A stretch of 64,000 nt of DNA from Takakia lepidozioides (Eukaryota; Plantae; Bryophyta): contig CM060734.1 of the NCBI GenBank assembly GCA_030704615.1, positions 6,758,001-6,822,000 of the forward strand. Reading direction: 5' to 3'. The translations under genes and the position numbers were made by a program. The notes under the pieces are model-generated. The model worked only from the letters and a program-made list of their open reading frames with translations, was not told the origin of the DNA and did not search any database. Shown in pieces: positions 3,865 through 64,000 of the stretch (the stretch's first letter is position 1; each line of letters starts with the position of its first letter).

Positions 3865-3999
3865 ATCCTGAAACTATAACCTAGAAATTAGATGTTTGAA
3901 TTTTTCAGCTTAATATGTTCAGTAAGATACTTCAGCTAACTAACTTCTTAAAAAAAATGGAAACCTCGGAGCAACTGCTCACAAATTATAGGCCTCTTA

Positions 4000-4112
4000 A
4001 TTATAGTGAGGGAGAATATAATACCTTACACAACTATGTAGCAGGATTTGAGCCTGGAATATTCTCGTGGGTGGCCATAGTGCACCATCACTTGAGCTAT
4101 CGACTCTGTTCC
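4000..4112 (-). mobile_element. tRNA-derived SINE-like element (old copy)
   Basis: Minus strand reads aacag...TAGCTCAAGTGATGG (A box-like)...GGCTCAAATCCtgctac (B box-like) with tRNA-like spacing. It shares head and post-B-box sequence with the element at 18073-18287. Confidence 0.6.
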
Positions 4113-15900: not shown

Positions 15901-17750
15901 GATTGATGAATAAACTTGATTGAGAGCCTATGTCCAATTGCCAGACAACTTTATATAGCCCTGGTGAAGGTGTAAAGTATCACAAGACAGACTATAGGCC
16001 AAATCCAGAGGAGCATGTGGAGACTAACAAAATGTTGGAGTATACTGCAGCCAGCTATTCTACTGCTACCCAATAGAATATATACTGGCAAGGTACAGGT
16101 GTCAGCATTACAACATTATGATACTCTTGCAGTAGAGCATGGCAAGGTCCTTGGTAGAAATACATCGAAATTCTTTGTCTTCATGTAGGACGCATTGCAT
16201 CACAAATATGACATATTAGACATAGAAGAGGCATGAGGCAAGGGCCAGTAGTAAAGCAAGAGTTTTCATGGTCCCAAGTACAATAGAATAAACAGTAGAG
16301 CTTGTGTAAGCAGGTTGTATATACCGAGCCTCTGCAACCAGACCCCAACATCAGCCAAGTCAAGAATATCATGGTCCAGCACCCCAGCCTGCCAATCCAA
16401 CTCTGCATGATTAAGAAGTTCTATTTCCTGTGATTGACGCTGTGAATATTCATGAGATTCTTGCTTAACAATGATGCTGCAGTTGTGACTGGATTTCCTG
16501 TGTCTTATTGGTGCACTCCTGATGTTTAATGGCTTCAAGTAGCCATTAAGTACCCATTGAAGGAGTCTTTGGCTTGCCAGTCTTTGCTCAAGTTTCTACT
16601 ATGCACAGAAATCATAGTAGAAACATCTTTAGGAGAGGGTTCTATTCTTACTTCTTTACTGTGGCCCACATTGCACATAGATAGGATCTACCTTCCAACC
16701 TCCAGACTGATAGGACTTGCACTCGGACACAACGAAAAGTAATATGCTTCTTTTAAATCCTGAGCACCTTTCTGGGTGCACAGGAAGATCCTCTGAAGAA
16801 AGCAACTATTACTCATAAATATACTTATTTGATGTATGTAAATACAAATACACACCAATTTCTGAGCATGACTAAGAACAAGGGGGTCGCACACATAGCC
16901 CCATTGTCTGCTTGTTTTCCCCTTTTCCGTTTATTAAATTCTGGTTCTGGCAGATGTCTGTATGTACTAGGGACGTCCTCAACATCTTCAGCAAGTTTAA
17001 GCTCCTCTAGCATCTGGGTGCGCATGTCAATCCTGTCCATGCACCCTTTCACAAGCTTGAGGTACTCCTTGAGGCTAATACTGTTGTCACCGTGGGGTAT
17101 AGAAAAGCCTGCAGCCTGCGACGACACAATGGAGTTCTGAAAATCCAGTGTGTGGCTGGTGATCACAATGAGTAACTGGTACAGCCTTAACAAGAGTCTA
17201 AACAACGTCTACCAAACGTTCCTAACAGAAATTCTTCATACGGTAACAAGCAGAAGTCGTCCTACACCTAAACCCCCCCCTACAAACTGGGATGCATGAC
17301 ATTAAAACGAAATATGACAAACGATAGTGAGCTCTTGGTAATGTACATTGCAGAGCTAATGCCAGATCTGGCAGTTTACCTCTTTCTCATACCTGGGCCC
17401 TTTTGTACAAGTCTTCCTCAGTATCGGGTCTCAAAGAGCCAGCTGGGTTTTGGCTTTTCGGGTTGAGTTGCTGCCGCCTCAGCCACTTCAATCAGGTCTG
17501 TAGTGTCGACCGATACATCAACCCCAGCTGTGGTACTTCACAGAGTTCTGTCTCAGGAGACAATCTACCAATGCTGGAAACATAGAAGCAACATCGAAAC
17601 CCACTGACCAGCATCGACGATGGTCGCTGGAGCTTCTCTACAATCTGCGGAACCCAAGGCCATGCCCCGCATCCCCGACAAGCATTTCCAAGGTCCCGAT
17701 AGCGAGCAGAACCGCCAAACAACCCAGGTCAGCAATCCAGAGGCAAGACG
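12950..17750 (-). pseudogene. Probable decayed multi-exon gene of unknown function
   Basis: An in-phase GT-AG intron (17392-17137) joins ...EEDLYKRAQ|NSIVSSQAAG...LKEYLKLVKGCMDRIDMRTQMLEELKL. Further exon-like blocks lie at 16325-16660, 15560-15960, 14140-14690 and 13030-13540, with in-frame stops or frameshifts (e.g. TGA 17492-17494). No family recognised. Confidence 0.35.
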
Positions 17751-18072: not shown

Positions 18073-18287
18073 GTTTGTTTGTTTTTTTTTTAATAAAGGG
18101 AAACACCTGTGTCGCAGAGAAGGGGGAGAAGGGCGTACCACACCCCTCAAGTAGCGGGATTTGACCCCAGGGTCATCCGGATGGCACTCAGTTGGCTGAG
18201 GCTAAGTTTATATACTCGATAGAGTATACAACTTGGTTGTCACCCATTGTGATAGTTCACTTTACCAACTGAGCTACTTACTGTTGG
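18073..18287 (-). mobile_element. tRNA-derived SINE with poly(A) tail, interrupted by a captured Gypsy RT fragment
   Basis: Minus strand: A box TAGCTCAGTTGGT (18276-18264), B box GGTCAAATCCC (18166-18156), non-tRNA tail, A-rich end (T-run at 18073-18091 on plus). Confidence 0.75.
18190..18258 (+). other. 69-bp Gypsy RT fragment, 68/69 identical to 55990-56058
   Basis: AGTTGGCTGAGGCTAAGTTTATATAC(T/C)CGATAGAGTATACAACTTGGTTGTCACCCATTGTGATAGTTC. The only mismatch is 18216 T vs 56016 C. Confidence 0.97.
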
Positions 18288-20728
18288 TTAGTTTTATTAG
18301 TTAGAACATACGGTTGACAAATGTACCCCGGCCAAAATACAAAAGGATCTTTATGTGTAGGGTAAAGAAGCGAATACGTCCTGCGTTGTATCTCGCGCAA
18401 TCTGATTGGCCAGGAATTATCCCATATCGATTGCCTGTATCCAGCACCCTGTATAGTATATAATCAGGTGTGAGCTGCAAGGGAGTGGAGGTTGGGCTTA
18501 TGGTTGATTATGTCATCCCAATGTGGAGTACGTTGTATTCGGGGACGTTACGTACTTATGTACCCCCCGAAATATAACATACTTACCCTGAAATTTGTCC
18601 AAATAAGTGTACTCAAACTACAAAGGAAAAAAGTGACGAGGGTTCTTTACGAAAAATCTGTTGCTAGCTCGTTCGAGACTCATGCCCATCTTTCGGACAG
18701 TCTTATCCCCTGCAATTCCTTGTGGATTGATTCTCAACTGCTAGGCCACCACACGACCTTCTATGGCGTTCTCTGCTCACCAGACTTTAGAATCTGTTGG
18801 CCAATTTTCCTGGGTGAGAACAACCCATAGGGCAATGTTGGGTGTTATGGTTGCCACCGACTATATCATCATCATTCAAAGCTAGATCTGTATAAAAATG
18901 GCAACTAACCCAGGTAGATGGAGGAGGTTGAAGGAAGCGGTGTATGCATTACCTCTTTCTGGACCATATTTCTCTATTGTCTTAATTTGTGACAGGCACA
19001 ACAGTCTATTGAACTAAGGCTGGATAAGTTAGGCGAGAATCTATTATTTACTCATGGTGTGTGAGGTTTAGTGATAGATTTAGTTGAATGGAGCAGAACA
19101 TATTCTTAGGTTAGATTGGGAGGGATAGTTATTATTGTATTTATAACTACGTATGTCTGTTGTAAGGTCTTGACCATGTTTTGAAATGTGGTTGTCTGTG
19201 AGGGAAAGAGTGTGTACATGGAGTGTAAAATTTTGCGGCATAGTTGTTGTCATGTCATGACAACGGCCTTCACAACATGAGCAGATCAGTGACTGACTCA
19301 TTTGGATATTTGTCGGAGGTACTTTATGGCTTCAGCAGACCAGGGCCCAGCACTCCAGGAATTCCAAACTTTGCTTCAGCACTTGATTGCCGTTCTGACT
19401 CCTCCCACAGCTCAGTATCTACGAGTTTGTTATGTGCCAGTGCTTACAAAAGCTGGAGATCAGAAATGTAGGATAAACCGAAACAATCCCTCGTGGGTCA
19501 AGCAAACACCATCTTGGGACTACAGATCTCACCAACTTTGTTCTCAGCCCTCCCTTTCTCATTGTAATCTAGGTAGTTGCAGCTGCAGACCTCATTGCGG
19601 ACGTTCCATGAAGACTGATTATCCCGAGTTTACCCTCAGATGGTTCATCTAACATATATGAAAGGTATGGAGATGAAGACAATGATGCGCGTTCGAAGGC
19701 TTCTCAATGGTTGCTAACTTTTGTACTCCAACCATCTACAGAAATCCATTTGGAAGCACACTCCAAACCACAAACTTGCTTTCACCAAGCTGCCCACACC
19801 AATTGTTACACCCTTCTTTTGTGAAACCAGTATTCGTGGTGATAATGATGCGCAACTAGAGGCTTCCACACCGGGCTGAAGCACCCTTCTCAACGTGCAA
19901 TTTGGACGAGGTAGATTATATTAGCCCTCGCGAGAAAACATTGAGATGGAAACAGTGATTCAAAGTTCTTTTCAGCCAAATAGCGTGCTCACTTCTTCAT
20001 AAAACCATGACATTTCGCCAAGCAGGTCGGCGATGCATTTAAAGAGCTGCATATGTGCCATGTTTGCATAACCATTTTGAAAAACAAAATGATCTGATAT
20101 ATTATGAGATATAAAAAATTGATGGTAATATAAATGAGAGTAATTACAGGAAGTAAAATAAAAGACTTTTTAGCTTGGTTTGCTAGAGTACCACGAAAAA
20201 AGATATGCCTACGTGGAGGGTGCAGAGTACATATTAAGTAGCAAATAACTATGACTCATGCAACTCCGTGTCATTTCGATCAGCTTGAGGTCATTGTCTT
20301 TATGAGCTTTGTTTGTAGAATGTGAAGGGGTTTACAGAGTTAGGATAATTCAGCAGAGTGAAACATATATGGTCTCAACTTCAAGGTCCATCACTATAGA
20401 ATTGAACCGAGGGGCTCCGCCCTCTCACCATGATCTTGTCTAAGGCTTAGCAAGGTTTTAGTTATGACTATCTTTTAGGTTTTGCCAAATCCCTAACCTC
20501 CTCGTCCTCCTAAGCTCTCCAGACTAGCGGTTCCACTTATTTACAAGTGCCTCTATATTTAACCATGGCCGCCGCCATGGCGCCTCTATTACCTCTCAAT
20601 GTGCTTGGGGGTCTTCCCACCTCACCTTTTGCTCTAGCAATGCTTCTAATTGCTGGATCATAGCGCTTCTTTGAGCTCCCTCTTCGTGTTTTTAGACTAG
20701 ATTCCACCAGCAAACAAAAAATCACCAT

Positions 20729-23402: not shown

Positions 23403-23590
23403 AATTGACAATGACCCTAGTTGGTCTTGTCCATGTCTAGACATGACATGAATATCTTCCCTCTCCCTCTCTCTTATTAACTTTTTCTACCCCCTCTTTT
23501 TTTTCTTTTTTTTGTGAGCAGCACGAAAGAGAGGGAAGATACTATGTTTTGTCGGGACATGGACAGGACCAAACATGGTCATTGTCAATT
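23403..23590. repeat. Inverted repeat (~63-bp arms, ~63-bp pyrimidine-rich spacer)
   Basis: AATTGACAATGACC/GGTCATTGTCAATT, TGTCCATGTC/GACATGGACA, TATCTTCCCTCTC/GAGAGGGAAGATA. Confidence 0.85.
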
Positions 23591-26500
23591 TTTACGACAA
23601 ATCAACCTCATGAAGAGGCATTATCAGTCAAACTCCACTTCAAATCAGATCTTATGATGACCTCCATTACATTTCAAAGACAAAGAATCTACCTGGTAGA
23701 TTTCAATGACAAGAAAATACGGGTGGGAGGGTGGGATTACTTAGAAGATCCCCTCCTTATAATAATCCAGCTTTATATTCTAAGGAACAGTATGCTAAAC
23801 AAGTGTTATGCCTGTTTTAGAATTATAAGCTATGGGTGGCATCTAAGCAAACAATTAAATGTTTACCTATATCATGCAATAGTACTGCTCATCTGGAACC
23901 CAAAAGTTCCAGCTATTTTCCATTAATCACACAACCGGGATATTAAATCATCTGGTTACTTATAAGATAACCAGTTTTTTAATAACAACAACCCAGAGCT
24001 TATCTGCTACATTTTTAGAACTTCTTGTAATCATGACATAGAGTCAAAACTCATTGCATTGTTTAGTAAGCTTGATTTCCCAGAACTGCTTTCTCCTGTA
24101 GTGTTCTGTATCAGAATATGTCATAGCTAGCAAAAAACAAACAGCTATCTTTTTTGTAACATAAAATCCAGAGCCATGTTGTAGGTTAATCAGTCTTTGA
24201 TTACCAAGCAACAGCAGAGGCTTCTCTTTAAAACAACCAGACCTGGTTTAGGTCTGGGGTCATTATGTTACAACCTTGACAAGGTGTTTGCAAGGCAAAA
24301 AAGACTATTAATGAAGTTCAAAAAGGCCATAGTTCCCACACTTGTTCAAACCCTGGTGTTACACAGGTTTTGAATCGATAACATCTGAAAAAAATATATT
24401 GTGTAGCCTGATATTTTTATCAAGCCAGAGCAGCTGAAATCATTTAATCTAACCCAACTAAAGCTTGGAGGGTTTTTAGAATAGCTCGATTCTGGGTCCC
24501 CACCAACTCATGTTTCTTGTGTGTCTTGGCATCAATCATGCCAGAGCAGAAATAGTGAGTCATGTGTTCTTTTTTTTGTAACCCACAAGCCATAAACAAG
24601 CTGTATATAATCTGTAATTACAGGAATCATATCCAGAGCCTAGTTTAGGCCTGATGACATCAGGTTTCTTACCTTAGCAGATTGTATGCAAGGTACAAAA
24701 AACACAGATGGAGTTCAGAAAGCCACAGATGTTCCATAGTATGAGTACATAAAGGCATACAGGGCCTTAGAACAAAACAAGTGCAATGCTATGTCATATC
24801 AAAACCAGCCATAGCTAGAAAGATCAAACAAACAACAGTCTTTTTTGTAATCATACAATCCAGAGCCATGCTGGTAAGTATGATGTTAATCATTCTTTGG
24901 TCATCAAGCAACAGAAGAGGATTTTCTTCAAACACCAGGACCTGGTTTAGGTCTGGGGTCATTATGTTACCACCTTAACAAGGTGTTTGCAAGATAAAAA
25001 AGACATTTTAATGAAGTTCAGAAAGGCTATAGTGCCAATACATGTTCAAACCCCAATGTTACATAGGTTTTGAAGTCATAACATCTGAAAAAAAGGCTGT
25101 GTTGCCAGATATCAGAGCAGCTGATATCTTCAATCCAACCTACCAAGAGTCTATAAAGCCAGTACATGTTTTTCTAAAAAAACAAAAGCTTGCTTTTAGA
25201 AGAGTAATTTTGGGTCCCCACCAGTCCATGTTTCTTGTGGAGCAGAAACAATGAGTCCTGTGTTCTTTTATTGTAATCCAAAAGCCACAAACACAACTGT
25301 ATACAATCTGTAATTACAGAGTGACATGAAGAGGTAGCAGGTTACTTACCTTAGCAGATTGTATGCAAAGTAAAAAAGGAAAGGAGGTTCAAAAAGCCAC
25401 AGAGGTTCCATAGATTGAGCACATAAAGGCATACAGGGCTTAGTATAAACCAGATGCAAGCTCTGGCCTCTCCCCTACCGTGTTGCTTGAAAGTGTACAT
25501 ATCAGAGTAGCAAATCGTGCTCTAAGCATGAAAAAGAGCAGACCTTAATAGAATTCATGTGTTCTAAAAAGGCTCGCTAATGCACTTGCTGCTTCAACAC
25601 AGAGATAAAGGTTGTAAGCATATCTAGATTGGTCAGGTAGGGAGGCAAAAATGAGACATCTCCCTGGATAATCAGCTGATGTCGATGTCACTTCACTTGC
25701 AGGTTTGTCATCAGATTCAAGCTTCAAAAATCACATTAAGTGAGGACCCTCACCTGGTCCCATCACAAGCCCCCACAAGAACCAACAGGTTAGTGAGAAT
25801 TGTGGAACCCCAGGTGAATCGGGTCTCACGCTTGTTATCGCTGTACAACATGAGTTCTAACGCAAGAATCAATTCTAAACACAAGCAAGGTTATCCACAA
25901 CCTTAATCGATTGCGGAAGAGGACTCGACATCGCTCCAAGCACTTGACAATCAACAGCACAAACAAGCAATGGTTTGTTGAGATCTATGCGCATTTTAAC
26001 AGGTGAAGAAACCCCTTGAGTTTTTATGAGCAGTGCTGAAACTTAATGATCCAGAGAGGATCTACAAGCAATCGGGCAACCTAAGGTAGATTGCCCGCCA
26101 AGGGAGTAGGCCACCATACTGAGGGAATTGAAGCACTGCCGCCGTTACGCATCCCAAGGGAGATGAGAAAGGACTGGAATCTTGCCAGAGTACTTGTAAG
26201 CAGCATTGAAGCGTCTCCATAGCCATCAAAATCATAAAATTCATGCTAAGAGATCCCTCTGACGCCATCACTTCATCTCCCGTAGAAAAAACGCACAGTA
26301 TCGTGCAAGTTTTATGGCAGGAGAGGAAATATGGCAAACCATTGCGATTTCATCCATGTGGGATGAAAAATAAGGAATGAAAGGTGAATATTCCCCTGTT
26401 GTCATCGCCATGTCATCTAGCAGGGATGACATCCTAAAATCGATGACGAGAACCTGGCATTCATTAGGGTTAGATATAAATGACCTTAATAATCCAAAGG

Positions 26501-26891: not shown

Positions 26892-27391
26892 NNNNNNNNN
26901 NNNNNNNNNNNNNNNNNNNNNNNNNNNNNNNNNNNNNNNNNNNNNNNNNNNNNNNNNNNNNNNNNNNNNNNNNNNNNNNNNNNNNNNNNNNNNNNNNNNN
27001 NNNNNNNNNNNNNNNNNNNNNNNNNNNNNNNNNNNNNNNNNNNNNNNNNNNNNNNNNNNNNNNNNNNNNNNNNNNNNNNNNNNNNNNNNNNNNNNNNNNN
27101 NNNNNNNNNNNNNNNNNNNNNNNNNNNNNNNNNNNNNNNNNNNNNNNNNNNNNNNNNNNNNNNNNNNNNNNNNNNNNNNNNNNNNNNNNNNNNNNNNNNN
27201 NNNNNNNNNNNNNNNNNNNNNNNNNNNNNNNNNNNNNNNNNNNNNNNNNNNNNNNNNNNNNNNNNNNNNNNNNNNNNNNNNNNNNNNNNNNNNNNNNNNN
27301 NNNNNNNNNNNNNNNNNNNNNNNNNNNNNNNNNNNNNNNNNNNNNNNNNNNNNNNNNNNNNNNNNNNNNNNNNNNNNNNNNNNNNNNNNNN
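26892..27391. other. Assembly gap (500 N)
   Basis: Run of N. Confidence 1.
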
Positions 27392-49391: not shown

Positions 49392-49891
49392 NNNNNNNNN
49401 NNNNNNNNNNNNNNNNNNNNNNNNNNNNNNNNNNNNNNNNNNNNNNNNNNNNNNNNNNNNNNNNNNNNNNNNNNNNNNNNNNNNNNNNNNNNNNNNNNNN
49501 NNNNNNNNNNNNNNNNNNNNNNNNNNNNNNNNNNNNNNNNNNNNNNNNNNNNNNNNNNNNNNNNNNNNNNNNNNNNNNNNNNNNNNNNNNNNNNNNNNNN
49601 NNNNNNNNNNNNNNNNNNNNNNNNNNNNNNNNNNNNNNNNNNNNNNNNNNNNNNNNNNNNNNNNNNNNNNNNNNNNNNNNNNNNNNNNNNNNNNNNNNNN
49701 NNNNNNNNNNNNNNNNNNNNNNNNNNNNNNNNNNNNNNNNNNNNNNNNNNNNNNNNNNNNNNNNNNNNNNNNNNNNNNNNNNNNNNNNNNNNNNNNNNNN
49801 NNNNNNNNNNNNNNNNNNNNNNNNNNNNNNNNNNNNNNNNNNNNNNNNNNNNNNNNNNNNNNNNNNNNNNNNNNNNNNNNNNNNNNNNNNN
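49392..49891. other. Assembly gap (500 N)
   Basis: Run of N. Confidence 1.
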
Positions 49892-52548: not shown

Positions 52549-54920
52549 ATGAGTGATGAAAGAGAAGCTAGACTCCAGAGATATTTAGCAAAAAGAGAAA
52601 GTTATCTGAAACCTAATTATCCATATCTTTGGGAGAGAGGAATAGACATAGGGGAATCATCTGGACCTCTCACACCATTAAGATCAGAGAGTACATCACC
52701 TATATCGGAAGAACTAGAGGTGGATGCCACTCCTTCTTTTTCTTTGCAAGAAAGATTAAGGGAATTGGTACGGGAAGAAGATCAACCACGAGGTGAAAGA
52801 TCTGAGGTACATCCCTGGATAAAAGATTTGACATAAATCTTTGATAAGAGTTGGCATGGAACACCAAAAGCAGGAACTCCAGTTTCTGAAACGGAAGGTG
52901 AAGAATGAGGAGAGGATGTGGCAGAGCCAACGGAGAGTTCAGACTCTCCAATACCATTGCAGTTGAGTTACATGAGTGAAGAAGAAACCCAAGGGCAGAA
53001 CTTGGAGGATGAAAACAGAGAGAAGGAATTGGAAGAGGAAGAGTATGAAGAAGTAGACCCAACAGCTGAGGTTGAGACTACAACCAGGACATCCCAACCC
53101 GTTGGACCTGGATCAAGTGGAGCACTTGGATCACAGGCTAACAAAGGTGTCGGCTCAGGGGGATCAGGCGGGCCGCCTGGATCTGGCTATGGGGGGACAG
53201 GGAGTGTGGAAAGTAGTGCAACTAGAGCTGGGAATACTGTGAATATTGTGGGGCCAGTAGCAGGGAGTGCTCAGGGGCCACCACTTGGTGGAAGATCCAC
53301 CACAACTACAACAGGTCCTCAAGGACCAGCACCAGCAAGGGGGCCAGCATTTGTCAGTGGGCAGAAGGTAGGGCCACAGATGGTGTTACAACCAACACGG
53401 GCAAAACCACATTTTCCAATATATTCAGGAAAAGGGGATCCTGATGTACACATTAGCCAATTTGAGCACATGTGTATTGTAAACAATGAGAATGGCGATG
53501 ATGCCAATATGAGATTGTTTCCTTGTTCACTTATCAAGAAAGCAAGTGAATGGTATGCAAGATTCCCTGATAATCATTTTCTAACCTGGAATGGCTTGAA
53601 TACAACATTCCGAAATAGGTTCAGGACAAGTAAAACTGAGGATGAAGTGTATGGAAGTTTACAATAGTTAAAGCAAAAGAAGCATGAAACTGTTGAGGAG
53701 TATATGGAAAAAATGGATTTGATGATGAAAAAGCTGGCTGCTGTACCAGCACCAGGTTTACAGAAGACTTGGTTTGTGAGTGGACTAAGACCAGAGTTGC
53801 AAAAGAAAGTGCATTTGAAACAGCGAACATAATTGAGCAATTGGGAATGCTCGGGAGAGAGAAAAGGGGACTCTGAGGATGAATCAGATGAGGAAGAAGA
53901 GCAAGAGCTGAAAAGGAAGAGTAAGAGAAAGGAGAAGTTGAAGAGGGATAAGTATGATAAAAGATTAGAAGAAATCTTGAAGAAGTATGCCACAGAGGCT
54001 GCAACACATTGGAGGAAGGGTGTTTGGTGTGCAAAGTGCCAGAATGAAGGCCATACCACCACTGAATGCCACATGAAGGAGAAACACTGTACTATCTGTA
54101 AAATGGATAACCATTCTACTGAGAATTGTTACTACAACAGAAGGACAGCAGCTAGAGAACCTCGGCAAGTAAGGGTGCATCAAGTGCAGCCCCAGCCAAG
54201 AAGAAACAGTGATCAAGACCACTATGGTAGGCCTGGTGGTTATAACAATGGCATGGAAAGGAGACGTAATTCAAGAGAGAATTACCAAGGAAATTCCAGA
54301 GGCAACTATCAAGGTAATCCAAGGGGGAATTACCAGCCAGGGTATAAGGATTACAGAAACAATTCCAGAACAGACCAAGGGCGAGGACCTAATGGGGAAG
54401 AACTGTATTACTATTGTAATCAGGCAGGCCATTGCAAGGCAGCCTGTCCATTCTGGATCAGACACCAGAATGAGATGAGAGCTCCTATGAATGAGGGGCC
54501 AGTGGTGGCAGCTCACATGGTTAGGCCATGTGTTGTACCAGAAGTAAGTACAACGATAGTAACGAGAAGCAAAGCCAAACTAATACCTCCAGTAGATGAG
54601 GAAGATGATGATAATGAAGATGGCAGTGATGTGCTTGAAGATGATGAGGCTTGGAGAGATGAGAAGGAACTGCACAAAGAAGTGGCAGATACCATAAGGG
54701 AAATGCAGAAGAGTACTGATATTCCTATGGCAGATTCCTCTGATTCTGAAAGAGAAGAGGAAGTGAGTGAGGATGAAGGGAAGAAAGAAGCTGTAGACAT
54801 GCAGAGTAATGAAGGGACTTTGGCTGAAGTAATATGCTAGTCCAAAGCGGAGATTACCATTGGAAAGCTATTGGCTGTGGCACATTATTGTAGACACAGG
54901 CTGTATCAAGCAATCAATTG
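52549..54920 (+). pseudogene. gag: gag (retrotransposon gag domain, three CCHC-type zinc knuckles) with premature stops
   Basis: PIYSGKGDPDVHISQF...LFPCSL..ASEWY...TWNGL..F; CAKCQNEGHTTTEC, CTICKMDNHSTENC and a degenerate YYYCNQAGHCKAAC. Confidence 0.88.
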
Positions 54921-55019
54921 AATTGCCCATGTGACAGGGAACACAGACCTGAATAGCAAGGTGATCAGTTATAATGTGAAGCCGGAAGGGCGAGAAACAG
55001 TCATGGACTTTGATGATTC

Positions 55020-58000
55020 TATGCCAATAATCCAATTGAGAATTGGAAGCACAGAACTAACTGATGTACTGATAGATGAGGCTCTGGAGTGAATATCATG
55101 ACAGAAAATTAAGGCAGAAGCTTGGTCTAAGTAACATGAAACCAGCCCCGTTTACAGTAACAATGGCAGATCAAAGAAGTGTACAGCCATTGGGATTGAT
55201 AAGAGGAGTTAAGATACAGATTCAAAAGATGATCTTTATGATCACAATAACTGTATTGAAAATGGATGAAGTCATGGAAGCTTACTCCTTATTGTTGGGA
55301 CGTCCGTGGCTGAAACAGGCCAGGGTATTCCATGACTGGAATTCCCAGTTACTAACTGTGCATAATGGGATGCACAAGATACAAATTACCACTAAGAAAT
55401 CTAGTAGATTACCTGCTACGAGAAGACCTCGAGGGGTCAGGGAGTATGACTGGAGGGGAGGACTGGATGAGAAGCAGGAAGCTACCTGTTCGCTGCACAC
55501 CCAGAGTGGGAGCAGGTTGCAGAGATGCAGCTGGAAGGCCTAAGTTGTTTAAAAGGTATCTGCTGTGGTGTAGTGACAGCAACACCAATTGAAGGTGAAA
55601 CAAGCAGTTACCCACCACATTTCTATGAAGAAAGAGAAGGAGAAATGGAAATCCTAGAGGAACCAGCCACTGTGAGTTTACAGGATGAAGTGGTGACTGG
55701 TTGGACAATCACAGCTGATGAGCAGGTGAGAGAAGTGAATGTGGGAACTGAAGAAGAACCGAGGATGGTGAAGGTAGGGGCTGATTTGGAGCCAGAATTC
55801 TTTGAGGAAGCTAAGAGTTTGTTCATCAAATACAGAGATGTATTTGCTTGGAGCTACGAGGATCTAAAAGGATACCACCTGAGATCTGTCAGCATAAGAT
55901 TGAACTGGAACCAGGGTCAGTACCAATCAAACAGGCAAGGTACAGAATGAATCCCAACTATGCACAGAAGGTTGGAGAAGAGATCAAGAAGTTGGCTGAG
56001 GCTAAGTTTATATACCCGATAGAGTATACAACTTGGTTGTCACCCATTGTGATAGTTCCCAAGAAGAATGGTAAACTGAGAGTTTGTGTGAACTATAAGA
56101 AGTTGAATGCTTGCACGAAGAAAGATCCTTTCCCTGTGCCATTCACAGAAGCGGTATTGGACACTGTGGCAGACCATGAGATGTACTCATTCATGGATGG
56201 CTTCAGTGGTTATAATCAAGTGCAAGTGGCAGAAGAAGACCAGGGAAAGACAGCTTTCATCACAGACTGGGGGTGCTTATGCATACAAAGTCATGCCTTT
56301 TGGACTTTGTAATGCACCAGCAACCTTTCAGAGAGTGATAAGTGAATCTTTTCATGAGTATCTGGATGATTTCATGCAGGTGTTCTTGGATGATTTCAGT
56401 GTGTACAGCTCTAAGAATGAGCACTTGCATAAATTGGAGTTATGTTTGGCCAGATGCAGGATGAGAGGTCTGGGCCTGAATCCAGAGAAGTGTACTTTCT
56501 GTGTGAACTCAGGGGTGCTTTTGGGACACATTGTGTGTAAGAGGGGACTTCTTGTGGATCCCAGGAAGACAGAGGCCATTAAAGCCTCTCCACCACCAGT
56601 AAATGTTAAGAGTCTAAGGAGATTCCTTGGACAAACCAGTTATTACAGAAGATTTGTCAAAAGGTATGCACAGATAGCAGCACCATTGAGCAAGCTTCTG
56701 AAGAAAGATGCAGTGTTTGCATGGACAGCTGAATGTCAACAGGCTTTTGAGGAACTTACATTGTCAGTAACAACTACACCTGTGCTGATTAACCCTCACT
56801 GGCATGTAGTATTTCATGTTCACTGTGATGCCTCAGGAGAAGCGTTGGGAGCGGTGTTAGCCCAAAATGTTACAGGAAATATAGATTCACCTGTGTACTA
56901 TGCTAGCAGGTTGATGAACAGTGCTGAAAGGAACTATAGCACAACTGAAAGAGAAGCACTGACAATGATTTATGCAGTCAAGAAATTCAGGCATTACCTA
57001 TTGGGAAGAAAGTTTATGTTTTATGTGGATCACCAGGCTCTGATATATCTGGTGAACAAACCTTTGATAAGTGGAAGGATAGCAAGGTGGTTAATAATCT
57101 TGCACGAGTTTGAGTTCGAAGTTGTTTACAAGCCTGGCCGTTTGCATCTTGTGGCAGATCATTTGTCACGCCTAACAACAGGAGAGCCCGCCACAGGAGT
57201 AGACGACCAATTACCTGATGCGAGTTTATTTGCAATGGAGGTGCAAGGAAGTGCAGATGAATGGTTAGATTGGCAGTGGCCAATCAGATACTACCTTACT
57301 CATGGTCAGTGCCCACCTAGTTATGGTAAGGAGCAGAGGAAGAGAATCGCTATCAAGGCTTTACCTTATACTATGGTAGGGGGCAGAATGTATAAGCTAG
57401 GACCTGATGGAGTACTTAAACGATGCTTGTACCACCATGAAGTAAATAAAGTTTTGGAGGAAGTTCATAAAGGAGTGGCTGGAGGTCATTTTGGAGAAGA
57501 GACTACCAGTAGGAAGATACTACTTGCAGGTTACTGGTGGCCTACTTTGTTCAAAGATGTACACAAGTATTGTCAGAGTTGTGATGAATGTCAGAGGCTA
57601 GGACCTTTGCAGAGATCTGGGAAGATGGCTTTGCATCCTACGATGCCTACTGAACCATTTCAGAAATGGGGACTAGACTTTGTTGGACCAATTAACCCAC
57701 CGGCCAAGAATACACAGAACAAGTATATAATTACAGCCACTGATTATACTATGAAGTGGGTGGAAGCTAAAGCTCTGAGGGACAACACAGCCAAGTCCAC
57801 AACAAGGTTCCTGTATGAGAACATACTTACACGATTTGGCTGTCCCTGGAATTTATCAGTGACCAGGGAAGTCACTTCATTAATGAGACCATTGAACTAT
57901 TGACTAAAGAGTTCATGATTGTGCATAGGAAGAGTACAACGTATTACCCACAGGGTAATGGGCAGGCAGAGGCTACCAACAAAATACTATGTACTATCTT

Positions 58001-58809
58001 GGCTAAGATAGTCAATGCAAACAGAACGGATTGGGATACAAAGCTGCTGACACTTTGTGGTCATACAGACTTCATATAAAGTCACCACTAAGTATACACC
58101 ATTCCAATTAGTTTATGGTATGGAAGCTTTACTTCCAGTGGAATTCTTGTTACCTACCATGAGAACTGAATGGGGAAAGAGAATGGAATTGGAAGATTCA
58201 ATTAAGGTCAGGAAACATGAATTATACCATGTGGAAGAAGTACGTGCTGATGCAGCTGATAACATGACCAGAATTCAGATGAAGAGGAAGGAACAGTTTG
58301 ATGAAGGCAAATTAAAGACTTTTAAGACGGGAGATTTGGTTCTCTGGTTGCAGAAGAAGGGGAAGATTAAAGCTTCTAAGCTTAAATCACCATGGAAGGA
58401 ACCTTATGTCATACAGAAGATGTATGATAACAACACAGCCATGTTACAAACCATTAACAAAGAGATGCTGGGAAGAGTCAATGCCAATAAGTTGAAGGGG
58501 TACAGTGGTATCCATGACAAACCATTGCAGCACGATTTGCATGTTGAAACGCAAAAGCAGTCACGGGCTGCGCCAGTGATACCAACGGAGTATGGAGCAC
58601 TTGTCGCTAAGCCGAGCATATATGACCAGGGCGGGAACTACATGTGTTTGCATACCTATCACAGCCCATCACAGCGTGACACAGCCTATCACAGCCCATC
58701 ACAGCGTGACACAACCTATCACAGCCCATCACAGCGTCACACAACCTATCACAGTGCCACACAGCCTATCACAGCCCAACACAGCCCATACAAATTACAC
58801 AGTCCATAG
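55020..58809 (+). pseudogene. pol: pol: aspartic protease, RT, RNase H, integrase, with frameshifts
   Basis: Protease VLID(G)GSGVNI (frameshifted at ~55080) and LLLGRPWL; [16 protein letters not shown] and FLDD; RNase [22 protein letters not shown]; integrase [27 protein letters not shown]. Confidence 0.95.
58655..58790 (+). repeat. 30-bp minisatellite (CCTATCACAGCCCATCACAGCGTGACACAG, ~4 copies)
   Basis: Direct repeats; translate as YHSPSQRDTT. Confidence 0.9.
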
Positions 58810-59563
58810 GGTCAGTGACAGGTGGACGCGAATTAACGGTAGAAAAGTGGCCATCAAGTGAAGAAAAAGTTTGGAAGTCAAACTTGGAGAATGTGCCACG
58901 CGGAGAGGGGAAGACGGGGGCATGTTTAGAAACGGACACGTGGCGGCGAAGGCGAAGCACACCGCGCTGCATCGATTGCAAAAGTGAGTTTCATCATGCA
59001 AGAGGACAAATCGGGCCGTCAAAGTACCTACCCGGTACAACAACTAATACTAATTGTGGGCCCATTAATGCATTCAGTGCCAGGGTAACGGAACCCTTTT
59101 CGAGTTCAGAAAAGGGAAACCTATGCCACATGTGCTGTCCTACTGGACATTCCAGGTGGAAATGTCCATGGAGGGGGGTGGAAATAAGGAATTATCTAAG
59201 CAGTCCACAGCCAATCAGGAGTGAGAATTACATGCAGGTGGTTCCCTCCAAGAAACAAGAACAAGAAATAAGAAGTGTTATGAGTGGAGTGGCTCTGAAT
59301 AGCCAAGCTCTCGACGGAAGGGGCAATCAAAGCACTAGCCTGGTAGCTATGGCAGATGTAACCGATTACACACTCGCTTTACTTCTCACGCAGTGGCGCA
59401 AGGACGGACGCATTGAGAGTATATTTTCTCTCACTCGTTACTTGCAAGCCCACAGGCTTACACGCACTTACCTGTTCCATTCTGTGCCAACCATACCTTC
59501 ATGCTCTGTGCCCTGCAAGCTTTCCTTCAGCTGTTTCAAACAAAGCCTTTCTGTTTGTCTAGA

Positions 59564-62500
59564 ATGAAGAGAGTGAGGGGAATGGAGGATATCAGGGTGA
59601 AGAGCACCACAATATTGCAGAAGCAAACAATTGCAGCACCGCAAGCAGTACAGCTGCTAAGGGAGTTGCGATTGGAGGGGCTGCTACGCAAGGACTGGTC
59701 CTTGCATCATCGGCAGTTCATGATACAATTTCTTCAGAACTTTGAGCCTCGGACGGGAGTTACTCAGGTGAGGGGAGTAGATATAGAAATTACTCCCCAG
59801 TACCTGCAGCAATTGTTTGATTTGCCATCAGGACATGTGGATGTGGATGAGCACAGGGCAAGATTGCAGATAGGGAATTTGTTCCAAGAAGGGAGTTTCT
59901 TTAAAACTCAAGTTACGCTTGTACCAAAGCCGAGTACCCAGGGCTTAGGGAAGTTGGCCAAATATTGAACGTTCTGTTTGCCATGAAACAGAACCAACAG
60001 TATTTGAGCAGGTCATTCACAGAGGAGATCCTGAAAGCTTTGAGGGGAGAGGATGTCGCTTGGGCGGAGTTAATGTACAATGGACTGGTGGACAAGATGA
60101 AGAGGTTACAGGGCACTGCTGCTAAGTCTCCGATCATTGTGTCTGGTCCAGTCATTGCCCAAATAATTCTTGATTCTTGCATACTTGATACTCGGGAACG
60201 TAAGGAGATGGGAGTGTTTGAGGCAGAAACCACTGCAATTGAAGAGCAGGGCTCTTCACACAGTGAGGGTGGACTGGCAGGGCAACACCAGTCTAAGAGA
60301 CAGAGGCGGGGTATGACTGTAGTGGCGGATCCACTGGCTTCACGGAAACCGCACGATAATGTTTCCCAAGCTCTTGTGCAAGATGGGGCACAGCAGCACA
60401 GAGAGCTGTTATTATTGGAAGCACAGCCTTCGGAAAGGGAAGAGGAAGTCACTTTGATACCACAGCCACCACAACCAATTGACTCAGTTGTTTTAGAGGT
60501 TCCACAGTTAGTACATGCTGTGACATCACCCCCAATTGCTCTGGAAGGAGAAAGGTTGGACATTCCCACTACAGAGCAGGTCGTGGCCGAAATTGAGAAG
60601 GGTGACCTTCTCTATGAAAACTCTGGCTTGGTAAGGGAATCAGTGATTCCAGAGGTGCAGCGGTTGTCCAGGGAAAACCTTGCTGTGCATGTAATACCCA
60701 CACCTGTGACGGAGGTACCAGGGGTAGAATATCAAGACACTGCAGCACTTGTGGCGGATGAGGTGGTTCAGGAAGAAAATCTGGTGGGGCAATGGCCTGA
60801 ATGGTTGGTGAGGCATCACACTGTCGAGGATCAGGAAGAACAGCAGCAAGCTCACCATGATGACCCTCAGCAGGCCATGCTTATGAGTTCCATAAGCAGA
60901 ACACTTAATTTGTTGGGCACTTATGTGAAATCCCATGTTCCATCTACCCAATTGGCAGCTTTGAGGGAGGAACTCAGGAGGGAGTTTGAGGCTCGACTTG
61001 CCACTGAGTGTGCTAACAAGGTAGATGAGGAGGTCAATCTCAAGTTACAGCAAGAGTTAGAGGACACAAAGGCTGCTTTGCAGTTGGCCAAGGGACATCT
61101 GATTGAAGCCGGCCTCGAGCAGGACCAGTTGCATGAAGCACATAAGCAACAGTTATATCAAATGCAGGTGAAGCATGAGGACAAGTTGCAAGAAGTGAAT
61201 GCACTACATACAGAGTTGCAGGTATGAGAGGATGACCATACAATGTGCTACACTCACAACTACTCTTGAGCAAACTGCATTAGAAGTTAACAGACAAGGG
61301 GAGAGATGTATGAAAGCAGAGGCAGAGATAATCGAGCAGGCAAAACTCATTGTTGATATGAAGAATACAATCTGTCGCAATGAGAATACTTTCAAGCAAT
61401 ACAGACAGGTTGAGGCTGACCAAGAGAGGTACATCCTGGAGTTGCAACAAACGGTCATGGTAAATAGAAATGAACTCTCTGTGGCTAACAAGGCTCGGAA
61501 GGAAGCCAATAATCTGGCTGCTGCTCATGCGAAGCGCATGGAGGCTTTACAGCAGCAGTTAGATGTGTACAAGCTCACAGAGGAGCAGACTCTCAGGGGT
61601 GCCACACACAACTTGGTGGATAACCACCTTATGCAGGTCTGGTTAGCACAAGGGCCAGTGGAAGGCAAAGCACCACGGAAGCTCACCCAGGGCGAGATGA
61701 ATGAGCTCAGACTGTAGGTGCAGAACATTGCCACAACTACTATAGACAATGTCTATAGTAAGATAGCGGAGCTACAGGAGGATGTAGAAGGCCTGCAGAC
61801 TCAGGTGGATGACCTGAGTTCAAATATTGACAAGAGAGTCTTTGTACCTGAGGAGCAGCTGATGGCTACTTATTTACAGGCCAGAACTCTAATTTTTCAG
61901 TCTTCTTCGCAAGGGGTGCAGGAGATGCCAGTGGTAGAAGGGCCTGTGGTACCAATACCACAACAAGTGACTTTGCAGGTAGCTGACCCTGTTGTTACAC
62001 TCGGGCTATGATTATGCCCTTCAACCAAATTCCCATTGTGTTGGATTTGGCTTGGAAGGAATTTAGTCCGCCACAGTCGTTGGCTCATTACTACCAGATC
62101 ATGCGCATTTGGCTGCCAGTGGCGACTAGGACTAAGGTTCTTCCGAACAATCGACCCATTGAGGATCATCACTTTGCGAGGTACTGGTCTGAAGCAGGTA
62201 CCATGTTGAAAGAATTAATTGCCTTCCAAGTTGTACATGGGTACATTTATACCAAAACCAAGGAGGTATTAAGTATTGTCATGGGCTGTGGATTATACTA
62301 TGCTGCTTGTTTTCTGGCACATTATCACATTGAGCAACAGAAGATGCAATCGCGATTTCTGAGTTATTCCAGTGGGGATCATTGGGTCTTACCTTCAGTG
62401 CCACCTCATATGTACCTATATGATGCAAAAGTTATGATGCAGAAGGATTCCCAACTTCGTTCATGGTTTCATTCGGCTTGGAACAATTTGACAACACAGA

Positions 62501-63009
62501 AATTCGGCCCTGAAGATATTTTCTTTAAGGGACATGAGGCATGGAAATACTTGCACTGTTCCCAAGTCATTGGCACACCTCTTACCTATATAGATAAGGA
62601 ATTCATGACGTTCACTAATTTTGCATGCCAGCGCTTACAACAAGTTGTACAATTTAAACTTCCAGATATGGTTGGACAACATTGTATGCCACACAGGATT
62701 CCACTTAAAGTTCGGCCGTTAAAACACCTGAGGGGCGACGAGGATTCTGATACTACTGTTTCTTCAGCGGACTCTTTTGACATGGCAGAGGACTATGTAC
62801 TTCAGATGGCAGAGAAGAAACGACGGGGATCTCCTATGCCTGAAAGGTTACCTCGTTATCAGCCAAAGGAGGGCCAGACATTTCCAGGTAGTGCTCAATC
62901 ATCTCCGTCAACCAGTGACAGGATTCGGGCTCGCACACGGAGTCCTTCACGAGACTCTCATCGTCGGAAGGGTGCTCACTCACAAAGGTTTGCTAATCCC
63001 AAACAGTAA
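59564..63009 (+). pseudogene. Large extra ORF 3' of pol (~1150 codons reconstructed) with a central coiled coil; interrupted
   Basis: Five abutting sense ORFs (59501, 59965, 61199, 61718, 62008). The N-terminal FMIQFLQNF...VRGVDIEITP..LQQLFDLP resembles Athila-type plant transposon ORF domains, followed by an E/Q/L-rich heptad region. Confidence 0.75.
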
Positions 63010-63167
63010 ACCGTGATGACACGGCTTTTTGAGAGAGAGAGGGGTAAATGTTAGAGGGCTGATTGGGACTTAGACGCTTTTACGGGTTCTGTGGGGTACC
63101 CTTAATTTTTGCGCAGACTGAGACCAACAGGAGCCTTAGGGGTGGCAGCAGCAGGCTTTAGGGGGGT

Positions 63168-63370
63168 TACACAGCCCGACACAGCTTTACACAGCCAGCC
63201 CGACATAGGCCAACACAGCCAGTCACAGGCCGACACAGCCCAACACAGCCAGTCACAGCCCGACACAGCTTCGCACAGCCCAACACAGCCGACACAGCCA
63301 GTCACAGCCCGACACAGCCTTACACAGCCAGTCACAGCTCGGCACAGCTTGACACAGCCTGTCACAGTAC
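63168..63370 (+). repeat. 10-bp-based minisatellite (CACAGCCNRR) in the 3' UTR
   Basis: About 20 CACAGC cores in tandem. Confidence 0.9.
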
Positions 63371-63432
63371 ATGGGGAACAGTTATCATGGGCAGGGAACG
63401 ACTATGAGGGAACGACATCTGCAGAAGGAACG

Positions 63433-64000
63433 TGTTACTACAGGGATGACGGTTAATTAGTTAGGTGGTTAGAACAGCTTGCGGGCAGATAAGGGGAGCG
63501 GCAACGGAAAGAGGGGACACTTCACGGGGAGCGTTTCTTGGTCATGGAAGAGAGGAGATCAGGCGGAGAGCAAGAATGAGAGCACGGAGAAGGAGGAGAG
63601 ATGAACAATAGATGCTTGTTACATGCAAAGCTGTAGTGAAACTGTAGGGCAGATTAGAGTCACCATGGCATTGGCCTGATACCTGATAAATCATAATCTG
63701 ATACTTATTCGATACAAGCACACTGTGTAGAGAGATATGAGTGAAGCTGTGAAATGAATGCATGATTAATTGGAATTAAGTAGATATTGAAGCAATCTGA
63801 TGCTTCAGTATCAGATAAGGTGAATTGATAACATGAAGGCAAGAAGAAATACAAATGTGAAGCACAACCATGATTCACTAGCTGTAGGTCATGACTGATT
63901 GTACTGAGCGGGCTGAGTGCTTAGAAATATCCAACTCTTTTATCTTGGAGTTTCCACCTCAGATAACGAAGGGATGGGTGAGTAAAAGCCGTTCGACAAA
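63433..64000 (+). repeat. Putative 3' LTR of the second Gypsy element (runs off the window)
   Basis: TGTTA start after purine-rich AGAAGGAA. An alternative PPT, AGGGGGG, lies at 63160-63166. Confidence 0.4.

Follow-up and report, generated by a model that had tools for sequence, protein, structure and literature searches.

How did a piece of a Gypsy retrotransposon come to lie, in antisense, inside the promoter region of a tRNA-like SINE, and does it serve any purpose there? The question is posed by a locus in the moss Takakia lepidozioides (GenBank assembly GCA_030704615.1, contig CM060734.1), which we analyzed as part of a stretch of 64,000 nucleotides (positions 6,758,001 to 6,822,000 of the forward strand). 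This whole stretch is referred to here as the window, and all coordinates are counted from its first base. A first-pass annotation, made from the sequence letters, had described the locus as a minus-strand, tRNA-derived SINE carrying a fragment of retrotransposon RT-coding sequence between its A and B boxes. It had offered two explanations, i.e., a self-promoted guide RNA directed against the retrotransposon or a one-off filler or template-switch accident.

Anatomy of the interrupted SINE

Read along the minus strand, the element near 18 kb opens with a 5' part (positions 18259 to 18282) that forms the start of a tRNA-like head and contains an A box, TAGCTCAGTTGG (18276-18265), within an exact 14-mer of the canonical tRNA D-arm. 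The 69-bp insert (18190 to 18258) comes next. Beyond it, the 3' part (18092 to 18189) completes the tRNA-like head, with a B box at 18167-18157 (GGGTCAAATCC) and the 3' strand of a closing stem, and adds a body of approximately 65 nt. The retroposon ends in a pure run of 10 A residues (A10; 18082 to 18091). The insert therefore lies between the two promoter boxes of a minus-strand tRNA-like element, as had been described. The start-to-start distance between the boxes is 109 nt with the insert (an A-B gap of 97 nt) and 40 nt after its removal. The latter value is near the 45 nt that separate the A and B boxes of an uninterrupted tRNA-like element at positions 3950 to 4107 (minus strand), and the earlier statement that excision restores tRNA-like spacing thus holds. 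With the insert removed, an 8-bp acceptor-like closing stem is also predicted, the 5' strand of which is provided by bases of the 18259-to-18282 part.

The element is bordered by a candidate target-site duplication, with the 5' copy AAAACTAACCAAC at 18283 to 18295 and the 3' copy AAAACAAACAAAC at 18073 to 18085 (both on the minus strand). The two match at 11 of 13 positions (18283-18295 against 18085-18073); they are of low complexity and rich in A and C, and the 3' copy overlaps the end of the A tail, so this duplication is suggestive only. The upstream flank of the SINE is A/T rich and contains CAA motifs.

We estimated how readily such an arrangement would arise by chance. A loose pair of A and B boxes is expected 0.37 times per shuffled window and is not significant alone. 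The joint chance expectation for a box pair with an A tail of at least 8 bases within 150 nt is about 0.003, and that for the exact 14-mer of the canonical D-arm alone is about 5e-4. The A10 tail is one of only six A/T runs of at least 8 bases in the whole window. Chance alone does not account for the architecture of the SINE.

Programs designed for tRNA genes did not recognize the element. ARAGORN made no tRNA call on it, even when its settings were relaxed and the insert was removed; the Rfam tRNA model was silent on the head, with or without the insert, at the gathering threshold and at E values up to 10. Tobacco TS, Brassica S1, and the Au SINE are examples of tRNA-derived plant SINEs, which have A-rich tails and are mobilized by LINEs. 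The 18-kb element resembles such SINEs in its internal A and B boxes, its tRNA-like closing stem, its unit length without the insert (approximately 130 to 140 nt), its A10 tail, and its A-rich possible target duplication. It differs from them in that its head is not detected by tRNA models and in that no published SINE family was matched; a literature search with three short words of the SINE sequence found no match. Judged by these features, the element is probably a copy of a tRNA-derived SINE, and it is the only one of its kind in the window.

Searches for relatives were carried out in the window and in metagenome contigs. Beyond the element itself, neither nhmmer with the insert-free SINE nor a regular-expression scan for the A and B boxes detected further family members in the 64-kb window. 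An exact-pattern scan of the metagenome contigs with the 24-mer spanning the B box and acceptor region yielded 0 matches. A gapped A-box...B-box pattern yielded 14 loci in the metagenome contigs, none of them a family member; we rejected these as unrelated tRNAs or other SINE-like elements without similarity outside the boxes. Metagenome loci L001, L003, L005, L006, L009, and L010 constitute a tRNA-headed SINE-like family of their own, with a common GGCTGGACGGTC...GGGTCAAATCC head, and this family is unrelated to the 18-kb element. We also considered whether the element could be the LTR of a TRIM built on a tRNA and rejected this in view of the lack of a second LTR copy. The ORFs around the SINE, at 12 to 24 kb, had no Pfam match.

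The insert is a piece of Gypsy pol

In a blastn comparison, positions 18190 to 18258 were identical to positions 55990 to 56058 at 68 of 69 sites, on the same strand and with an extension of 0 bases on either side. The sole mismatch is 18216 T versus 56016 C. The 69-mer had no other match in the 64-kb window (blastn and self-comparison; E about 1e-27 to 1e-29). The near-identity to an RT-coding segment, on which the first-pass annotation had been built, is thus confirmed, and the match is real and far beyond chance. Its orientation was likewise as described: the plus strand of the insert carries the coding sense, so that the piece is antisense within the minus-strand SINE, and runs of 4 or more T residues are absent from both of its strands. 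The antisense placement in a SINE transcript holds regardless of scaffold orientation.

The matching segment belongs to a degenerate Ty3/Gypsy element (53833 to 64000, plus strand), in which a gag-like zinc-knuckle ORF is followed by pol in several overlapping, frameshifted ORFs toward the end of the window. Pfam matches in this element include RVT_1, RT_RNaseH, and Integrase_H2C2 (integrase zinc-binding). The best database relatives of its 598-aa and 154-aa pol ORFs were 51 to 66% identical, with the liverwort Riccia and the fern Adiantum among the named ones; no closer Gypsy was found in the protein databases with these two queries. The 3' part of the element contains ACAGCCC-rich tandem arrays (58654-58789 and 63169-63367), whose periods are 10 and 30 nt. 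They are similar to each other and may be LTR or 3' untranslated region repeats.

Positions 55990 to 56058 encode LAEAKFIYPIEYTTWLSPIVIV, located directly on the N-terminal side of the Pfam RVT_1 match and overlapping its first two residues. The motif is conserved among 120 plant and metagenome homologues. Given this conservation across Gypsy RTs, Gypsy is the native context of the piece, and the copying went from Gypsy to the SINE, not in the reverse direction.

The homologues also polarize the single difference between the two copies. At the codon concerned (18216/56016), the donor has CCG (Pro) and the insert has TCG (Ser). Of the 120 homologues, 69 have Pro and 0 have Ser at this codon, so the T at 18216 is the derived state and arose in the insert. 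The change is a C-to-T transition in a CHG (CCG) context. Loss of a conserved Pro codon is as expected if the insert has been decaying passively under neutrality.

An imperfect 31-nt palindrome is contained in the RT-coding piece at both places (18205-18235 and 56005-56035). With T at 18216, the central 7-bp stem of this palindrome becomes perfect on the plus strand, and the predicted fold of the 69-mer is -21.5 kcal/mol with this T and -16.7 kcal/mol without it. This stem-perfecting effect is probably a coincidence.

Scaffold context of the two loci

The donor-like Gypsy copy lies approximately 38 kb from the SINE in scaffold coordinates, across two gaps of 500 N each (26892 to 27391 and 49392 to 49891). 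The distance is therefore a statement of the scaffolding and not one of contiguous sequence. Distance and orientation across the gaps rest on scaffolding alone, and the middle contig is placed in the same way. The retrotransposon had been called a neighbor of the SINE: it is on the same scaffold at about 38 kb, which upholds the description in part, but that proximity crosses both gaps.

The middle contig (27392-49391) consists entirely of a tandem array of approximately 3.4-kb units (about 6.4 units; 95 to 97% identity), with internal subrepeats of approximately 215 bp; in the one unit inspected, ORFs did not exceed about 110 aa. Diverged fragments of the 3.4-kb unit, all of them short, occur outside this contig at 3302-3364, 23369-23657, 25740-25852, and 50776-51376. 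Two adjoining segments of approximately 680 bp at 24109-25459 share about 72% identity, suggestive of a tandem duplication of some age, and T8 runs are found near these segments at 23497, 23506, and 24570.

Junctions and the state before insertion

On the plus strand, the SINE reads ...CACTC before the insert and ACTTTACC... after it, and the corresponding flanks of the copied segment in the donor are ...CAAGA and CCAAGA.... At neither junction did direct reading reveal identity between the flanks of the SINE and those of the donor. The two ends of the insert have only 1 to 2 nt in common with the opposite SINE ends, and junction microhomology is 0 to 2 nt overall. Neither terminal repeats nor a duplication flanking the 69 bp was seen at the junctions. 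The abrupt ends together with these two absences indicate that the insert is not a transposition. Taken as a whole, the junction pattern fits uptake of a fragment in end joining and does not fit transposition or recombination driven by homology or microhomology.

Three candidate junction features were examined and discarded. An AGTG duplication of 4 nt at the insert fails to abut it on the right, and the distant relative described below is equally long at that place. Direct repeats of 7 nt (CAAGAAG) near the donor ends do not line up with the copied segment. A word resembling an A box, located on the minus strand at the 3' end of the insert, did not fit the consensus.

The uninterrupted element near position 4100 offers a limited view of the state before insertion. 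It ends in T8 rather than in poly(A), and ARAGORN and the Rfam tRNA model do not recognize it. No link between this element and the 18-kb SINE was detected by nhmmer. A local alignment of the two scored 47, versus 20.5 ± 3.8 for shuffled sequences (approximately 7 standard deviations), with the aligned part comprising mostly the tRNA-like head and extending slightly beyond it. The first-pass annotation had taken positions 4000-4112 to be an empty relative of the SINE. Missed by nhmmer and visible in the alignment, the element appears to be a distant relative at most, rather than an empty member of the family. A T-tailed SINE and a small Pol III gene are both possible identities for it. It carries no insert, and in its alignment to the 18-kb SINE there is no large gap at the insertion point, so that the 69 bp would have entered without obvious loss of SINE sequence. 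The proposed pre-insertion state of the SINE is accordingly a reconstruction from tRNA-like spacing and from one distant relative.

Origin of the insert

From these observations, we infer a break, a route of repair, and an order of events. With a probability that we put at roughly 0.7, the chimera arose in a single event, in which Gypsy DNA or cDNA was captured in the manner of filler while a break was repaired. The SINE copy (18086-18282, minus strand), tRNA derived and with a poly(A) tail, would have integrated first. A later DNA break would have occurred in the integrated SINE at the boundary of the D-arm and the anticodon arm, and end joining would have repaired it while taking in the 69-bp stretch of Gypsy pol. 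The template for this filler may have been a Gypsy copy in the genome, perhaps the one that shares the scaffold; alternatively, a piece of Gypsy cDNA may have been ligated in. The insert would then be passive filler, with its antisense orientation a 50:50 outcome of the capture, and decay of the locus would have followed, as represented by the C-to-T change at 18216 in its CCG context.

The microhomology of 0 to 2 nt, together with the lack of a large SINE loss relative to the distant relative, is in keeping with blunt capture during end joining. The 64-kb window contains just one element with an insert. The presence of a near-identical Gypsy copy on the same scaffold is a mild argument for a template in cis, with the reservation that gaps intervene and that its weight depends on how many copies the family has. 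Provided that the 13-nt duplication is genuine, its 2 mismatches in 13 positions, compared with 1 in 69 for the insert, weakly suggest that integration of the SINE is older than the capture. The cleanness of the insertion counts against capture by end joining, which in plants often deletes bases; an insertion without deletion would be a less usual outcome. A one-off filler accident, which the first-pass annotation had named as its own alternative, is consistent with all of the observations.

Comparable captures have been reported from several organisms. Ty1 cDNA is a main class of filler at breaks in yeast (PMC1976456), retrotransposon sequences were captured at Cas9 breaks in mouse zygotes (PMC4516963), and filler DNA has been described at maize wx, R-r, and p2/p1 (PMC2686159). 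The Takakia insert resembles these cases as a copy, tens of base pairs long, of a sequence located elsewhere in the genome, with abrupt borders, retroelement origin, a size within the published ranges, and neither transposon termini nor a target duplication; a donor may lie in the same chromosome region. It differs in that there is no deletion or complex mosaic at the junctions of the insert with the SINE, in that the insertion site falls within the internal promoter region of a SINE, and in that the break itself is deduced from its presumed scar.

Other origins deserve a hearing. The insert may have been gained in a SINE source gene, in which case the locus would be a retroposed member of an insert-bearing composite-SINE subfamily. 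The A and B boxes beside the insert are intact and the tail is pure A10, TFIIIC tolerates changed A-B distances (PMC4090602), and SINE bodies built from other repeats are known (PMC5786205). Foreign repeat sequence inside a SINE is common to those composite SINEs and to the present element. In those SINEs, however, the foreign module is family-wide and lies downstream of the promoter, whereas the 69-bp insert occurs in one copy and splits the promoter boxes. No second copy was present in the 64 kb or in the two metagenome scans, and the insert has diverged from the Gypsy copy at only 1 of 69 sites, compared with 2 of 13 for the candidate duplication. We consider this origin unlikely, although it is the strongest competitor to capture at a break.

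Less probable still is that the chimera formed during retroposition, with LINE-mediated reverse transcription of SINE RNA switching template to Gypsy antisense RNA or minus-strand cDNA and back again. Chimeric retrocopies do arise by template switching, and the insert is located inside the retroposed unit rather than at its edge. This route, however, needs two jumps, the second of them back to the adjacent SINE nucleotide without loss or duplication; microhomology is absent at either switch point, and the required template is the Gypsy antisense strand, which is the rarer species. We regard as very improbable an assembly or polishing artifact by which a read segment from Gypsy was spliced into the SINE. 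The scaffold has gaps and many repeats, with the two 500-N gaps and one contig composed entirely of tandem repeats, which makes such an error conceivable. Against it, the insert is short, the contig that contains it is unique, and the two halves of the SINE stay in register. The insert also differs by a base change of its own from the only other copy that the window contains, and a clean internal insertion of 69 bp is a rare product of chimeric joins.

Does the chimera act in silencing?

The remaining alternative to capture of passive filler concerns function. In this scenario, the locus is a cassette in which a Pol III transcript of the SINE, carrying 69 nt antisense to the Gypsy RT sequence, seeds spacer-like small-RNA silencing. 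Transcription of the chimera is possible, with the A and B boxes and the A/T-rich, CAA-containing upstream flank intact; plant tRNA genes have A/T-rich upstream flanks with CAA motifs as well. Also compatible with a guide RNA are the canonical form of both boxes, the insert's freedom from T4 runs, and a predicted RNA hairpin of approximately 13 bp within it. The tolerance of TFIIIC for altered box spacing, which extends to intron-containing tRNA genes (PMC4090602), points the same way. The parallel with tRNA introns is incomplete: canonical introns are located one base 3' of the anticodon (position 37/38), whereas the 69-bp insert is at the D-arm/anticodon-arm boundary and has no splicing context.

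Several observations weigh against such a role. The first T4 on the SINE strand is at 17307, i.e., 980 nt from the 5' end of the SINE, so no defined compact transcript is encoded. The 97-nt gap between the boxes is outside the usual optimum. Antisense orientation has a prior of 50%, and the sole change since the capture is of a type that neutral decay would be expected to produce. The case amounts to one locus with one insert; recurrent and diverse TE-derived inserts at the same position were not encountered within the window, where the element near 4100 has none. Plant TE silencing normally draws on Pol IV or Pol II transcripts. The guide-RNA proposal of the first-pass annotation consequently finds no support in a solitary copy with one insert, a T4 run 980 nt away, and a lost Pro codon. 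We give such a cassette the least credence of all the explanations, and the same very low credence goes to the broader idea of a SINE family that acquires antisense retrotransposon fragments again and again in the space between its A and B boxes, with Pol III making silencing triggers from them.

TE-fragment archives that generate antisense small RNAs exist in the form of piRNA clusters and plant siRNA loci. The chimera is like them in containing an antisense TE fragment in a potentially transcribed unit. It differs in that such archives hold many fragments and are defined by their small-RNA output, whereas the present case is a single fragment known from its sequence.

Significance of the chimera

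The SINE-Gypsy chimera is real, and its explanation is most likely an ordinary one, namely, a new instance of a known capture phenomenon. Were the functional scenario true, the SINE family would constitute a heritable, promoter-equipped archive of TE sequences, in its logic comparable to piRNA clusters. If several SINE copies proved to have different TE inserts at this site, or if the chimera gave rise to small RNAs, this would speak for a route into plant TE silencing that is driven by Pol III; to our knowledge, none has been described. If the chimera is a repair scar, as we favor, its mechanism is not new. It would add one more natural case of retroelement filler, in a seed-free land plant, and would be useful mainly as a dated marker of end joining.
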